A stretch of DNA of 64,000 nucleotides. It comes from Orbicella franksi (Eukaryota). Location of the stretch: the NCBI GenBank assembly GCA_964199315.1, contig OZ116702.1:10664001-10728000 (forward strand), given 5' to 3'. This document shows positions 28,701 through 37,056 of this stretch, piece after piece (the first letter of the stretch is position 1; every line of letters starts with the position of its first letter). Both the position numbers and the translations under genes were made by a program. The notes below the pieces were generated by a model. The model did no database searches. It was given only the letters and a program-made list of their open reading frames with translations, and was not told the DNA's origin.

Positions 28701-30349
28701 TTCCATTTATCTCAGCATGCCGAGAACGAAAGCAAATCTCGTAAGAGGTGATTTTGGTTAGCCTGTGAACACAAACGGATTTTTGGTTGGATATTAAAAT
28801 TATTCAGATTTATGAACGTTATGATGGTGCAAACAAAACGAGTCAATTTGAAATCGTTGTTAAGTGACTCTTACGTCGTTAGCAGGTTTTAATATACAAT
28901 TTCAGAAGTAAAAGAAAGTTTGAAACTTTTACTTGCTAAAAAAAGTTGAGAAAACTTGGCGATAAATCACGAAACATTTTGACAACAATAACGGCTTTAA
29001 ATTTTAGCGGGCCGTACAGTAGAATACGGCCCACTAAATTGATCAATCACAGCGTGCGTACTAACTGAGAGATATAGTAAAACAGAAAATTACACCCGTC
29101 GCTCTCCAGAATTTTGTGGCAACGCGCTAAAATTAGACCTGAGTGAATAAGCCAATCAAATGGGACCAAGTCCGTTGGGATTTGTGATTGGCAGGCTGAA
29201 CACCTTAGCCTCGTTTCCAGGTTTGACTAACTAAAACGAGGCAGCACATGTTTACGCGCTTTCCTTGCTGTAGCGGTTGGTGGCGGCGGTAGCATTTGTG
29301 TGTTGTTGTGTGGGAAACTTTAGGCTTAAGTTTTCTTTTATGAACCTTTCTTTATGAAGCTGGGAGAGAGCAAAAAACAGGTAAGAGGTTGATATGATTC
29401 AAAGATACAGGGACTTGACATGTTCAATTTTGCGCTCGAGTAAACCAGCGAGAAACCTACAAACAGCTGGCGTCGTTCGTGTATCTTCAGCTGTGTATTT
29501 CTGTTCGCCTAACATTCGTTGTATTTTTTAAATGGCTTTTGTCAATTTCGGTCAGGTAGGGCGATAAATTATTGAATTTAAATGCCTATCAAAGCGTGAT
29601 GTTCTTTTTCAGAAACTGGAAGGATTAGAAAGCATTCAACGGAGCTTTTCAGCTGTCTGCGCGCGTCACCCAGCTGAGCGAGTTGAAGTATGCGGGGAGC
29701 AATTGCAGAATACCCGGACACTTCATGGAGCTAACGAATGTCTGTGTTGTAAGTTGACCGGTAACCAGTTGATCAGAGATTATCTTTAGAGTACTATACA
29801 ACCCTGTGGTGAAACTGCTCATTTTGGACGCACCTACGCAGCCATTGTTGCATGCGGCCAAATTATAGACCTTCTCACGGTTTTCGACGCCATCTTGACG
29901 AGTGGGCAAAGCGGTCAGAAGTTACAGTGTTTGTATGGGAATCCGATGGTAAATAACTTTTCATATCAAACTTACGCTTAACATCTGCCTCTACAGATTG
30001 TCGTGACATGTCACGCAGTCTGGGGTCAGTCAAAAACACGCTAATTTTCGAACATTTTCTTCTTTTTCGTGTATTCCATTTGAATTGCTATCTTTCTTAC
30101 CTTCAGTTTATAAAACTAACATATATAAGCTTTCTATACCACTGTATTTGAAGGCACTAATAAGAATATTTCGCACGGGTTTTTTAGAGTTTTGGTTGGC
30201 AATTCAGACATGTCGAAGAGAGGTTCATGCCACATGCAAGCACTGGCCATAGAGTCTGGGGCTAGAACTCTAACGCGCATGCACAAAACTGGTCATTACC
30301 GCGAAATATGAAAAGAGGAATAAATTTGGTGCAATTTGATGTATAATAC

Positions 30350-32909
30350 ATGAGGTTTGAATATTGTTTGGGTTCAGGAAACGGGACTTATGCGCTGGTG
30401 ATTTTGTCCTCGCTGGCTCTTTTCGCGGTGGTGGTAGATGCACAAAACGATTTTGGCAAGGAAATGAGTGGTCCAAAAGGGGATAAATTGCCTTGGTTTA
30501 CTTACGAAATAAACAAGTAAGTAAAATTGCGTTAATTCAAACCTGTCTCATTTTGTTAATGTTTTGGTTTTTCATCAAATGATTTTTTTTTAATTTTTTA
30601 ATCAGCTGTCTCGTATATTCCCTGTCAAAGAATCCTGTTGAGGGACCCAACGACAAAAGTGCCGATTCTGTAATTGCAGGAATAGTGGAAAAAATCTTGA
30701 GGGAATCTGGGATTGGTGGAGTTGTCATAAATTGCAGAATTATCAACGTCTTCAGGAAAAAGATTTCTCTCCTCCATTCAGCATTCAAGGAATTTTCACA
30801 AAGTGGGGGGAAAGTATAAGTAAGCTTATTGACTTGTGCAAGGCAAAAAACTACTCTTTCAAAATTTTCTATCATGAGCTTCAAAACAATTCATTGATTG
30901 AGGAAAACCAACAGCTCCGTGGGCAGAAAAAGAAAGCTGAACTGGATTTAGCCGCAGAGCAGCCAAAGAGACTAAAAATTGAGCGGAAGCTTGAAGATGT
31001 CATTAGGGATTCGGAAAACAGAAAAAAAAACAGTACAAAGAAAAATTCAGGAGATAAGTGAAAAAAGCAGCAAGGATGTAAAAAAAGGGACAAGGAGGTC
31101 CAAACAAAAGTAAAAATTCACTGATTACACCAAACAGCACCAGGCAAGGATAAGGCGAGGATTTAAAGAAGACTGCCACTCGGCACTGTCATTTTTAGGC
31201 CTGTATGATTTTATTGCCACCAAGGTTGAAGTATTTAATAATGACACTCAGCAGTATGAAACTGTTTCATTGGTAGAAGAGGGAAAATTGAAACTACTGG
31301 AAACTGAGCCAAAAGAACTGAATGACAGTGATATTGTTGACATCAATATGTGGGTTTACTTAAAGGACAAATTTAGTATATCTAATGAAGCCTGGCATGA
31401 GTTGGCCATGAAGTGTAAAGACATGCCCACAAAATATAAAATATGCAAACACCTAGATAAGCTAAATGCCGATTGGAATCTGAAAAGTACACCAGGGGAG
31501 GCAGAGGGAATACAGATTTCTTTCAAGGAGAGTCTTGAGGAACAGATAAAAAGGCTGCAAAAAAATGGAGTATTGGTCAAGGCTACTACTATTAAAGTAA
31601 AGATCAGTGGTGATGGTGCTAACATTGGGAAAGACTTAAACTTGAAAATGTCACATATACAATTTTGAATGAAAAGGATGCAGCAATGAACGAAAAAGGG
31701 AACTATGTTTTAGCAATAACCAAGACAACAGAGAACTATGACAATCTTGAAGAAAGCCTTGCTGTTCTAAATAATGAAATGTCAAATTTAAAAGAAATAA
31801 CTGTAAATAATCATAAGTATAGCATCAAGTATTTTTTAGGAGGAGACTGGAAGTTTCTAGCCTGTGTCTGTGGTCTAGGAGCTGCAAATCAAAATTTTGC
31901 CTTTATTCGGTGTAAGTGCCCAAAACATGAAAGGTTTGACATCAGCAAAAAGTGGTCTTTAACTGATAAATCTCTTGGGGCAAGAGAATCATAAGAAATA
32001 GGTAAGCAAGCAAAATCTAAACAATGTAATTGTAAAACCAATCTATTATTTAACTTTATTCCCATTGACCATGTAATGATTGATACACTACATTTGTTTT
32101 TGAGAATATCTGATAATTTAATTCAACTTCTTATCAGGGAACTTTGCGGAAAAGATGCCATTGACAAGGTATCTACTTTTTCAAATGGGTTTTGTCAAAA
32201 CAGGTATAGACACATGGCTGGGTATGAAAAATTTCTAAAAGACCTTGGAATTAGTTTTGAATGGAAAATCAATAAGGACACCAAGAAGTTGGAGTACAGA
32301 GATCTTACAGGACCTGAAAAACTCTTGGTTTTTCAGCACATAAATGTCCATTCAATATTATCAGAATATCATACACAGATAAGCTGCAAGCCCTTTGCAG
32401 TAGTTTCATGGATATTATAGGTGATCTTAAACTAGACTACACAACAGATTATGCTGCATGTATCTCTAGCTTTGAAGACAAGATAAAAAAAATGGTTTCA
32501 AAAATTCCTTGACCTATACCAAGCAAAAGATGTGACAACTTATATGCATGCTTAGTATGCTCATGTGCCTGAATTTTTAAAGCTTTACCAAAATTTAGCA
32601 TATTACACCCAGCAAGGTATGGAGAAGTACAATGACACTGTATTGAAGGACTACTTTAGATCATCAAACCATAGAGGGGTTTCTGCACTAAGGCAACTTT
32701 TCTTGAAAAAACACAGAATACAGCTTTTGTAGGTGGCTGGTGTGGAAAGGGTGAAGGAAAGCTACAATTGTGGACACTGTTCAACTTCTGGCCATACCAT
32801 CAAAACATGTACTGCAAAATGCAGGAAATGTGATGCTTCTACTTTCTGTGCATGTCTTGTTAAAATAGATGGTAAATGGAAGCCAAGATGTGAATTAATC
32901 AATCAGTAA
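30350..32909 (+). pseudogene. Decayed RAG1-core/Transib-like (CMC-type) DDE transposase with C-terminal zinc knuckle
   Basis: Frameshifted pieces join into: GGPNKSK(K)FTDYTKQHQARIRR; KISGDG (Asp 31612); LGGDWKFLACVCGL..NQNFAFIRCKC (Asp 31845); MIDTLHLFLRI (32076-); RDLTGPEK; TTYMHA*YAHVPE (H-x4-H, 32547/32562); TQQGMEKYND (Glu 32622); CGHCSTSGHTIKTC; stop 32907-32909. A putative first exon 30350-30516 and intron 30517-30605 are less certain. Several frameshifts and in-frame stops. Confidence 0.75.
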
Positions 32910-33334
32910 TCATGTAATATATCAATGTATACATGTTTACATTGTATGTAAATAATTCACAGGCAAGTAAAATAATCAACTATTCATCAATACAGAAAAA
33001 TTAATGTACATGTGTTAAATCAAATATATTAGTGGTGGACCATATTTTTGTATCCACATCTGTTGCCATCTCCACGGACAAATGTAAAAATGACTTGATG
33101 CCTGTCTTCGATTTCAGATCTCACATATTTATGGCCAATTAATTTAAATTTCACTATGGGGTTTCTTTTTGTCAGCCAAAATCTCAAAGTACCTGGTACA
33201 ACATAGGTAAAATCACTGTTTTCATTCATGATCCGCTCATTCCACTTTGTGGCGATATAAAAATCCAGAGTTTCATCAGAAAGAACTTCATATATGAGTT
33301 TATTTCTTTGATATTGTTTGGACGTAATCCTTCC

Positions 33335-34860
33335 AAGACTTGTATTGAAAACGTCATCATCAACTTGAATTTCAATACGTGCTTCGGGATCCTCTCTGCA
33401 CCCTGCGTACAACTTTCGCTTGATCTCCCTGTACACACCTTGACAAAAAGCTTGCAGCGATCGCTAAGGGAATCATTGGTTGGTTGTGACATCGGTTCTA
33501 ATTGTATTACTGGCCAGGGCTGTCATTAAGTTTTGAAGCAGCCGTTGCATGTAAGTTATCACCCATAGCAGTGAAATACGTGGCCCACAGCCACGTTCTG
33601 AAGGCCCGAAAGGGCCTGAGCATCTAGGGGGGTCTGAGGGCATGCCCCCCCCCCAGAAATTTTTTGAGCATGAAACCCCTAGAAATGCATTTTCCTGCTT
33701 TCTAGGGCAGTACTTGAAGCTGTGATCGCTGGTATTAATCGACCGCCTCGACCAGTTGTTTTGTGAGCTTCCTCATTTCCATCGGTCCGTTGGGATTTAG
33801 GAAAAAATCTGTCGATCCAAGACTTGTATTGAAAACGTCATCATCAACTTGAATTTCAATACGTGCTTCGGGATCCTCTCTGCACCCTGCGTACAACTTT
33901 CGCTTGATCTCCCTGTACACACGTTGACAAAAAGCTTGCAGCGATCGCTAAGGGAATCATTGGTTGGTTGTGACATCGGTTCTAATTGTATTACTGGCCA
34001 GGGCTGTCATTAAGTTTTGAAGCAGCCGTTGCATGTAAGTTATCACCCATAGCAGTGAAATACTTGGCCCATGGCCACGTTCTGAAGGCCCGAAAGGGCC
34101 TGAGCATCTAGGGGGGTCTGAGGGCATGCCCCCCCCCCCCAGAAATTTTTTGAGCATGAAACCCCTAGAAATGCATTTTCCTGCTTTCTAGGGCATGAAA
34201 ATGGCAATTTTTTAATCAAAAATGATAAAGCAGAGTGATAATATGCTGTAGTACATCATCAGCAAATAGTGAAATAGCATCTTTGTTGCATCAACCTATG
34301 CAAGTGGTCCTTATTTTAGTACTGTTTGTTTTTCACAGTGCATAATTTCAAATTCATGCACCTTAATTTACAGAGATCAAATGAATAAAGTTATGAAATA
34401 TCTCCAACAGACCTGAGTGTTCCTTGTTTAAAAAAAAAAAAATGACAGTCCATAATCAGCAATATGGTTTTATGTTTGCTAACAGTTATAATAATTTGTT
34501 ATTATGGTCAAATGCATAAAACAGGAGTGAAACCGGAAATAAGAATTATAATAACATCTCTACATTACCGAGCTATCTTACCGTTAGAGGAACTCAAATA
34601 AGCTGGATCAGACATTGAACATCTCTTTCCGTTACAGTGGTAATAAGAATGAAATGCTTTACCATTTCTAGAATTGGGAAATTTTTCTTCCACTCTTTGT
34701 AGCATAATACTCAGTTCTACAGGCTGCCCACATGTGGCTGAAGTACTTGCAGTACTTGAAGCTGTGATCGCTGGTATTTGTCGACCGCCTCGACCAGTTG
34801 TTTTGTGAGCTTCCTCATTTCCATCGGTCCGTTGGGATTTAGAAAAAAATCTGTCGATCC
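33335..34860. repeat. Recent local duplication (~98% identical)
   Basis: 33335-33709 = 33819-34195 (offset 484); 33710-33818 = 34752-34860. Confidence 0.9.
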
Positions 34861-35279
34861 CAGGCTGTTTTGACGTGGGTTCTTTTCTCTTATTCATATT
34901 AAAACATAACTTTCTCTACACACGCGCGGGACCTAACACGATTGATCAGCCTGGACAACACCCTACATCGGTCGGCGGAATTTCTCAAAAGGCAGGAGCA
35001 GCGCATTGCGAGATAAGTTTTGCTGCTTAAAATGGCGTCTAAATGTAATTCACGACGATTAAGCAAACTGAAAGTTCATCTCCAGGGTAAAATATAAATA
35101 GTAGAACCAAGGAGGTAAGACACCAAGAAACAGTTATGTTTATTTCAACAGGGAAATGTTTAAAAATAAATTCGGTAAGTGTAGCATGTTCGTACCATCC
35201 ATCGACATCTTCACCCGTAACATCGAGAGAACTCAGCCGTAACAGGTGTTACAGGTTACGGCCCTTAATGACAGCCCTG
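33515..35279 (-). mobile_element. Internally deleted hAT-like DNA transposon with 15-bp TIRs and 5-bp TSD
   Basis: TIR CAGGGCTGTCATTAA at 33515 (duplicated at 33999) and its inverse at 35265-35279; CTGGC at 33510-33514 and 35280-35284. Residual ORF 34897-34565 (MNKRKEPTSKQPGIDRFFSK...FPNSRNGKAF) resembles a hAT transposase N-terminus. Confidence 0.8.
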
Positions 35280-37056
35280 CTGGCAAGTTATTTTCATCGC
35301 ATGGCCTCCATTTGTCAAATTTCTCACTGTACCCTTTGAAATGAATTTTACCCATGTTTCTCACTTTGTCAACCTGTGTTATCTCCACTGGATAAATATT
35401 CCTGTCCGTAGCTTTTAATTTCTTGTAATTCTTGGGCTTAGCTTCTGCAAATTTGTCAATAAATCTCTTCGGAATCTTACATTCCCGCTTCGCTCTGTTG
35501 TCCACCAAATTTGGCTGGTTAGACGGACTTCTAGACGCAGTTTGTGGGAAAAAAATTACAGACAAATAGATCACTTCAGTTTTATCTGACTAGAAGTATT
35601 CACATAAATGAGGCAAGGATTAAAATCAATTTTTCTTCTAATCTTGAGCTGTCAAACTTGTTAACCCATTGCCGCCTGTAACTGCTGGTGTGAAAAACCC
35701 CTCCGTTTCCCTGTGCCGCCTGTAGACCACTGAAAAAAAGCATGTGGGGACAATTGTCCTTCCTTTCGTCCCTGAACGTTTTGGTATTGTCCTTGAGGAC
35801 AAATAAACCAATCAGAATGGACTTTCAGAGTCTAATTTTAGAGGACTTTAAGGGTCCTAGAGAGATGGTGGTTCTTAAAATTGTGCGCTAGAAAAGTGCA
35901 GGTAATCATGGCGGGTTTGGGGGCCAAATCTTTTAACTTCCAAGGTGTTGTTTTCATTCCTAACACAGAAATTACTGCTTCGGGATTTAACATAGAAAGG
36001 AAAAAGACAAATCAATGTTTAGTTGGCCTCAGAATGGAAGGTCAAGGAGTACAGAGTCCTCAGACCTTTCTGGTGAAGAACTTTTTATTCCTGCAACTGC
36101 TGCGAAAACATGATCAAAGCGCTTTCAAGTATGTTTTGAATACAGATCACACATTTAAAGCAGCTTTTTGGACTTAAGAAACATAAATGGTAATGTACAA
36201 TATTACTTTGAAGTTGAAAATGACTGCAAAAGTGGTCAGTAAAAACTCCAGCTTTGGCTTCCATATGTGCAGGGAAATATTTTGCAAGAAGGAAAAAAAT
36301 TTCAATGGCTGACTTAAAGGCAAGAAGCACAAACAGAGAGTTGAACAAAATAAATGCCAGGCATTTTAGTGGAGCAGAACTTGAAGTACTACTAAACAGT
36401 TGAATTTTTTGGTCATTGCCCTTCTTTTGTTTTTGGTTAACGAGACCACTATTGACCACTTTGTCCACTAAACTGGCAAAGCTTGAAACATAAATGTACT
36501 AGTTATTTATTGCTCAAATATTTTGAGTCGAGTGCTATTTTTTTTTGACTCAGTGGTGTACATGTGCCCTTTCAGTACCATGTGCAAATATTTTGAATTT
36601 TGTTTATGTTCTTGTTAGACTGTATTTCAGTTGTTACTTACATCAAAAGAAGCACTTTCTGCACCCTGAATGTTTGCAGTAACATTCACTGTGGCCTTCT
36701 TCTCAATTGCTTTTTCAAAATGGTGATTAATATATTCCCCCTCCTCACGATCATCAGAATATTCGCTCTCACCTAGAACTTAAAGAGAGTTAAGGCAATT
36801 CCAATTTAGATACAAGAATTTGTCCAATAGTTAACAATTTAGTGCCAACTTACAAACATCACTTACAATACATTAACCTGCTTACAATACTTTGCATTAC
36901 ATTACTTGCTTACAAAATCTTGAAATCTTGAAGTTATGGATCTAAATTAATAATAATAAATCATTTGTTACTATTGATAGACCGGCCAGCCTAGACTAGC
37001 ATAACTATTTGCGGGCCAGTCCAACTGTAAAATGTAGATTTATCAAGAAATAAAAA

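Follow-up and report, generated by a model that had tools for sequence, protein, structure and literature searches.

Among described mobile elements, two systems come closest to the one considered here: in the literature, RAG-like (RAGL) elements consist of a RAG1L gene paired with a kelch-PHD RAG2L gene, and Transib is a single-gene element (PMC7204232) with the terminus CACAATG and a 5-bp target-site duplication (PMC1131882). The arrangement of a heptamer, a spacer and a second motif, with a 12/23-type asymmetry of spacer length, is known from recombination signal sequences and from some Transib and RAGL ends (PMC1131882, PMC10462144). Here, we analyzed a 64,000-bp stretch of the Orbicella franksi genome (contig OZ116702.1, positions 10,664,001 to 10,728,000 of the forward strand; hereafter, the window, to which all coordinates without a locus name refer). 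An earlier note, made from the letters alone, had seen in it a RAG1/Transib-like transposase gene tail-to-tail with a gene for a reader-type protein (the partner), and had suggested that the two form a single mobile unit. We found that positions 29962-35508 are a dead, right-truncated copy of a family of two-gene cut-and-paste DNA transposons of stony corals, in which the elements measure 3.9-4.4 kb. The window copy is a fossil, and its value lies in the family to which it leads.

The nearest parallel is RAGL/ProtoRAG of Branchiostoma belcheri (PDB 6b40), which likewise has two convergent genes between inverted ends, and which shares with the coral family the RAG1-core fold, the DDE triad, the Cys2-His2 zinc site and the CCGHC C-terminal tail. 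In addition, the coral partner resembles RAG2 in having a reader-type domain at one end, which in RAG2 is the PHD finger. The coral family differs from RAGL/ProtoRAG in that the partner contains neither a kelch propeller nor a PHD finger but a Royal-family domain followed by an alpha/beta domain, in that the transposase lacks the N-terminal RING/zinc region of RAG1, and in the heptamer, which is CATATCA as opposed to CACxxTG. Transib, represented by HzTransib of Helicoverpa zea (PDB 6pqn-6pqy), shares a transposase of ~700-800 aa without the RAG1 N-terminal region, as well as bipartite termini with a 12/23-like length asymmetry, described for some Transib families (PMC1131882). Unlike Transib, the coral element has two genes, and the CACAATG terminus was not found in it. 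Overall, the coral termini have the same layout as recombination signal sequences and some Transib and RAGL ends, and different sequences. Two other systems resemble the coral element in a single respect each. PIF/Harbinger transposons, which belong to an unrelated transposase superfamily, also encode a separate small second protein, which is a Myb/SANT-type DNA binder, whereas the coral one is a Royal-domain protein. Chromoviruses of the Ty3/gypsy group likewise combine a mobile element with a Royal-family reader, a chromodomain that is believed to direct integration according to chromatin state, but there it is fused to the retroviral-type integrase of a retrotransposon, whereas in the coral cut-and-paste DNA transposon the reader has a gene of its own.

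As judged by profile search and predicted fold, the first gene encodes a RAG1/Transib-superfamily DDE transposase, in agreement with the call made from the sequence alone. In single-sequence Pfam and PDB searches, neither the window pieces of the transposase nor the intact transposases of the family (~760-790 aa) matched anything, and the link to RAG1 is visible only by family profile and fold search. At E<=0.001, an exhaustive protein search with the transposase yielded 3831 cluster representatives. An alignment of 42 members shows D359, D437, C456 and C459 to be invariant and H669, H674 and E694 to be nearly so; the family thus contains a DDE triad and a Cys2-His2 zinc site at RAG1-like spacing. 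The distances D437-C456 (19), C456-C459 (3), H669-H674 (5) and H674-E694 (20) equal what we take to be the corresponding spacings in mouse RAG1, i.e., D708-C727, C727-C730, H937-H942 and H942-E962. The family profile matched zebrafish RAG1 (E=1.1e-9), mouse RAG1 (2.7e-8) and BbRAG1L (1.3e-4) and did not reach HzTransib; the hidden Markov model alignment placed the D-K-F...C..C and H....H...E blocks of the family on the GYDEK...C..C and YLHKTLAH...EGNE blocks of RAG1. An AlphaFold model of the transposase had a pLDDT of 87.7, with the core above 95, and its top 49 Foldseek matches in the PDB were all to RAG1, BbRAG1L or HzTransib (E from 1.2e-17 to 2.7e-7; TM by target up to 0.66). The best E-values were 1.2e-17 for RAG1, 5.9e-13 for BbRAG1L and 8.6e-12 for HzTransib, and the next fold, the P element transposase, followed at 1.6e-3. 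In the model, the N-terminus is helical, and the RING and other parts of the RAG1 N-terminal region are absent. The transposase also has an NBD-like region. A C-terminal CX2CX3GHX4C knuckle was found in two intact transposases (loci L004 and L007), in the window copy and in 16 of 42 wider-family members; such a zinc knuckle is present in nearly all invertebrate RAG1L proteins and clamps the terminal repeat in BbRAG1L (PMC10462144).

The evidence that this transposase and the partner belong together comes from other copies. Seven contigs were gathered via transposase fragments and via the partner, and in all seven the two genes lie tail-to-tail, with the partner directly downstream of the transposase, at protein identities to the window copy that range from 82% down to ~40%. 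A partner-profile scan of JGI metagenomes added 35 further loci; copies at least 96% identical were merged, and a locus was considered informative when it extended for 800 bp or more downstream of the partner. A convergent transposase is present at 20 of the 25 distinct informative loci. The fetched loci have dissimilar flanks and do not represent one duplicated segment. Across 25 loci, pairwise protein distances of the partner correlate with those of the transposase (r=0.80), and none of 2000 Mantel permutations gave a value as high. Open reading frames are intact for the partner at 10 loci and for the transposase at 9. Both genes are intact in L004 (transposase of 789 aa, partner of 235 aa) and in L007 (758 and 236 aa), and a contig of Stylophora pistillata (LSMT01000180.1, locus L005), which is among the informative loci, carries both genes, both of them annotated. 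In total, 85 homologues of the partner were found, many of them full length, with identities of 47-97%. Four partner pairs have an unsaturated dS, and in these the ratio of nonsynonymous to synonymous substitution rates (dN/dS) was 0.11-0.18; in most pairs synonymous sites are saturated, yet ~50-60% protein identity is retained. Both genes are kept under purifying selection.

These results make it very likely that the transposase and the partner are one inherited unit. The earlier proposal of a single mobile two-gene unit, for which repeated convergent linkage at independent loci had been named as the check, is borne out by the recurrent convergent layout inside shared inverted ends and by the co-divergence of the two proteins. 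Had only the window been available, the vicinity of the two genes could have been ascribed to chance, i.e., to two separate insertions or to a passenger host gene captured once, and the window by itself is indecisive on this point, with the right end missing and the partner broken by another element. However, the same order and orientation are found inside shared inverted ends at many independent loci with different flanks, the proteins co-diverge, and open partner frames are kept at ~50% identity, which renders a chance neighbourhood extremely improbable.

The termini of the family were located from the abrupt loss of similarity between pairs of copies. The partner-side terminus usually lies ~100-120 bp upstream of the partner start codon (39-152 bp overall) and consists of CATATCA, a variable spacer of 21-23 bp and ACATTTG in 20 of 21 loci. 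On the transposase side, CATATCA is followed by 11-12 bp and then by ACAT(T/C)TGCC, and inspection of the sequences by eye placed ACA at this position in all six termini. CATATCA itself is found in most of the 27 termini. The ends therefore display a bipartite spacer asymmetry of the 12/23 type, with the short side apparent from few termini. In the window, the left, transposase-side terminus is at 29962-29989 on the plus strand and comprises CATATCA, a 12-bp spacer and ACATCTGCC; the same terminus is found in L001, the copy closest to that of the window, and related ones in L002, L003, L007, L010 and L020. Its first base is set at 29962 because reads and contigs of the repeat that hosts the element diverge from the window exactly after 29961. 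The right terminus is gone: the last ~107 bp of the element, which include the leader of the partner gene, are missing, and a search with the right end of L001 (4596-4702) across the whole window gave no match. This loss explains why the earlier note saw no terminal inverted repeats; the ends that it could not find are supplied by other copies.

The partner is a protein of ~235 aa with an N-terminal Royal-family domain of the MBT/Tudor type and a C-terminal alpha/beta domain of ~145 aa; its predicted structure is a small barrel joined to an alpha/beta domain. A profile built from 42 homologues matched L3MBTL3 in its MBT repeats (1.5e-9), PHF20 and PHF20L1 in their Tudor domains (1e-4 to 1e-3; 1.4e-4 for PHF20) and MOF and MRG15 in their chromo-barrels (4-6e-3), and all these Royal-family matches fall in residues 24-110. 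The partner model superimposes on the PHF20L1 Tudor domain with a root-mean-square deviation of 2.3-2.8 A. Aromatic residues at positions 38, 56, 59, 63 and 66 of the homologue P0075 are kept in 31-39 of the 42 sequences, and the H-Y-x-G-Y and F-D-E-W blocks of the partner align with H-F-D-G-W and Y-D-x-W of L3MBTL3, which we take to form the methyl-lysine cage of the MBT repeat. Language-model neighbours of the partner all belong to Royal-family clusters, with scores of ~0.69 that offer a lead only. Residues ~90-235 were modelled at a pLDDT above 90, and the C-terminal domain surpasses the N-terminal one in both conservation and confidence of the predicted fold. No kelch or PHD match was found in Pfam, and no propeller match in the PDB or AlphaFold DB, as expected from the earlier view that the partner is not kelch-like. 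Its description as a Tudor-knot or chromo-barrel plus an unknown domain of ~150 aa also holds, in the form of an MBT/Tudor/chromo-barrel-type domain and ~145 aa without an assigned fold.

AlphaFold DB clusters that share the two-domain shape of the partner consist of unnamed or "chromo domain-containing" proteins, the members of which presumably come from molluscs, amphioxus, an octocoral and Glomeromycota. The best shape match of P0075 among reviewed proteins was the C-terminal half of the uncharacterised vertebrate protein C2orf42 (E=6e-3, low TM), and a beetle C2orf42 homologue matched at 3.4e-4. As a weak lead from predicted structures, C2orf42 may be a domesticated relative of the partner.

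As the overall explanation of these data we favour, with moderate confidence, a single two-gene transposon in which the partner serves as a chromatin-reading accessory subunit. The enzyme would cut at the CATATCA ends, pairing an end with the short spacer with an end with the long spacer, and the partner would be a working subunit of the complex. Its Royal domain would bind methylated lysine on histones and its C-terminal domain would contact the transposase or the element ends, so that excision or integration would be tied to a particular chromatin state. Such a role would parallel that of the RAG2 PHD finger, without homology to RAG2. Taken separately, this mechanism strikes us as plausible, although somewhat short of probable.

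A different function of the partner within the same transposon should be considered, namely that it serves the ends as a DNA-binding or architectural factor, or helps in nuclear import, and is not a reader of chromatin. The Myb-like second protein of PIF/Harbinger elements plays such a role. A function of this kind would suit a protein whose C-terminal domain, with no assigned function, is better conserved and predicted with more confidence than the rest, and the strongly conserved second motif, ACATTTG, must be recognised by some protein. Moreover, two publications report nucleic-acid binding for some Tudor domains (PMC13285377, PMC8800102). However, the transposase already contains an NBD-like region and the CCGHC knuckle, which in BbRAG1L clamps the terminal repeat, and the N-terminal domain of the partner retains aromatic residues where methyl-lysine cages typically have them. 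We consider an end-binding or import factor unlikely, although it is the alternative that we take most seriously. It is also conceivable that the partner acts against transposition or apart from it, as a self-limiting inhibitor or as an anti-silencing factor outside the cutting complex. Purifying selection and co-inheritance indicate only that the gene is important to the element, and do not reveal in what way, and more distant transposases of the family manage without a partner. Nevertheless, the two genes stay closely convergent inside the ends down to ~40% protein identity, and a chromodomain that is attached differently in one distant relative, upstream and on the same strand (L046), fits a recurring need for a reader better; we therefore regard a role outside the cutting complex as quite improbable.

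Compared to an accessory reader subunit in a RAG1-type transposon, some of the observations point the other way and must be set against it. The transposase is absent at 5 of the 25 informative loci; two of these exceptions, L020 and L023, have arisen by internal deletion and retain both termini. Among transposases that are 27-43% identical, the partner does not adjoin, which implies that the wider family does without it. Pfam Royal-domain matches of single partner sequences are all under the curated thresholds, the commonest subthreshold match being MBT (13 of 42 sequences). The fold of the C-terminal domain found nothing in the PDB with Foldseek at E<=0.001, a best Z-score of 4.1 with VIA, and no convincing match in AlphaFold DB clusters, AlphaFold DB Swiss-Prot models or the ESM Atlas. 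With respect to the termini, the motif on the transposase side is within one mismatch of ACATTTG in only two of six cases, and the heptamer CATATCA shares only CA with CACAGTG, the type of heptamer for which the earlier note had hoped. The 5-bp duplication that it had also hoped for, and that RAG, RAGL and Transib make, was not seen either: a comparison of 3-9-bp flanks (direct repeats of 2-9 bp were sought) in seven two-ended copies (L001, L002, L003, L007, L010, L020 and L023) revealed no target-site duplication, a genuine departure from those three systems. Finally, a poly(A) RNA run showed no coverage, i.e., no transcription, of the window copy; contigs labelled as metatranscriptomic are collinear with DNA and hence uninformative on expression.

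It should be noted that the outer ATAT of the terminus was evaluated as a hidden duplication in a CATATG target and was rejected, since uninterrupted copies of the host repeat continue with TCCAAAA directly after 29961 and contain no CATAT.

Several loci deserve separate mention. L020 (1094-2508) and L023 (1999-3402) are short non-autonomous derivatives in which the partner gene, or part of it, is kept and the transposase is lost. Five marine-metagenome contigs (L031, L035, L037, L038 and L041), at least 96% alike, carry a divergent partner (31-37% identity) and a well-kept CATATCA...ACATTTG terminus, and no transposase was found within up to 1.1 kb downstream. The partner profile was also run on four loci with distant transposases (L043-L046), with no match. 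In the last of these (L046, 1393-4457), the transposase is 27% identical to the family query, and a frame matching Pfam Chromo (27.2 bits, with a cut-off of 25.1) lies directly upstream, on the same strand, and overlaps the open frame of the transposase by a few bases. The arrangement may represent a chromodomain-transposase that is fused or frameshifted, and it hints that RAG1-like enzymes of the wider family recruit readers repeatedly.

In the literature that combines Transib or RAG1L with chromodomain, Tudor or MBT, we found no description of such a pairing (Repbase was outside this search). A broader proposal, which we put forward tentatively and with more doubt than confidence, is that corals have independently solved the problem for which RAG relies on RAG2, by means of a complex between an unrelated reader of histone marks and a RAG1-type transposase whose element has ends of the 12/23 type. 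The C-terminal domain of the partner would then be a new transposase-docking fold, and the relatives of the partner in molluscs, amphioxus and Glomeromycota and, as a weaker case, vertebrate C2orf42 may be further such elements or domesticated descendants. Two open questions on the origin of V(D)J recombination are why RAG1 needs a chromatin-reading second subunit, and whether the capture of RAG2 was a stroke of luck or only one among several possible answers. The coral family would be a second independent case in which to test whether a reader licenses cutting, whether it steers integration and how it docks on the transposase. The intact pairs (L004, L007 and Stylophora) make the experiments feasible, and the element may be useful as a chromatin-directed insertion tool.

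The window copy itself is heavily decayed. The earlier note had delimited the pair as 30350-35545, which starts ~390 bp inside the element and ends ~40 bp past the point where homology with other copies ceases. The left part contains a conserved open frame on the plus strand (30347-30517) that ends in ...TYEINK, and similar peptides are found at the same relative position in L001, L002 and L003. At this place, in the window and in L001-L003, the frame encodes a hydrophobic, signal-peptide-like stretch, and stop codons separate it from the transposase body. We regard it as a possible, perhaps probable, first exon of the transposase gene, which would be odd for a nuclear enzyme. The Stylophora gene model is ~290 bp longer in span than its coding length. 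The transposase pseudogene follows at 30598-32909 (plus strand), with several frameshifts and in-frame stops. In a tblastn comparison with the intact L004 protein it aligns as two pieces in different frames (30598-31638 and 31629-32897), at 44-59% identity, with five and six stops, respectively (11 in total). The first zinc-ligand cysteine is replaced, a stop codon lies between the two histidines, and the CX2CX3GHX4C tail is retained.

The stop codon of the transposase is at 32907-32909 on the plus strand and that of the partner at 33029-33031 on the minus strand, exactly where the earlier note had placed them (32909 and 33029). The AT-rich spacer between them (32910-33028), given there as ~120 bp, measures 119 bp; at other loci, 42-918 bp separate the ends of the protein matches. 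The 3' part of the partner gene (33029-33514, minus strand), comprising the middle segment and the C-terminal domain, has one frameshift near 33440, is collinear with L001 3804-4375 and is 50% identical to residues 97-231 of P0075; its C-terminal part is still open (33463-33032, minus strand). The 5' part with the Royal-family domain (35280-35508, minus strand) is 48% identical to residues 3-67 of P0075 and 94% identical in DNA to L001 4370-4595, and its start codon has become TTG (35506-35508). The similar decay of the two genes, which had been noticed from the letters alone, is thus confirmed, with frameshifts and stops in the transposase and several defects in the partner. Positions 35509-35545 are DNA that does not belong to the element.

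To the left, positions 29900-29961 belong to the high-copy repeat that hosts the element, with a contig word depth of ~1500 in a DNA run. Other copies of this repeat run on as TCCAAAATTGAATTTTAC after 29961, and TCCAAAATTGAATTTTAC is nowhere in the window; therefore, the DNA to the right of the element has been lost. A joint of 29954 to 35547, seen in one contig, was set aside, as its short side has 21 letters only and the sequence beyond is unlike the continuation of the repeat.

The two parts of the partner gene are separated by a foreign insert of 1765 bp (33515-35279) that resembles a miniature inverted-repeat transposable element, with 14-bp inverted ends CAGGGCTGTCATTA, and that is not present in L001. 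Within the insert region, a ~380-bp segment is found twice (33332-33709 and 33816-34195; spacing of 484 bp, 98-99% identity), and each of the two segment copies contains 186 bp of the partner gene. Between them sits a 118-bp piece (33707-33824), a copy of 34749-34866. The ends of the insert are very high-copy in DNA runs, with numerous short forms in which the two ends are directly joined, and its target is duplicated as CTGGC (33510-33514 and 35280-35284). Among eukaryotic DNA transposons, a 5-bp duplication is typical of Transib/RAG-type enzymes; thus, the insert may be mobilised by another RAG1-like family of the same genome.

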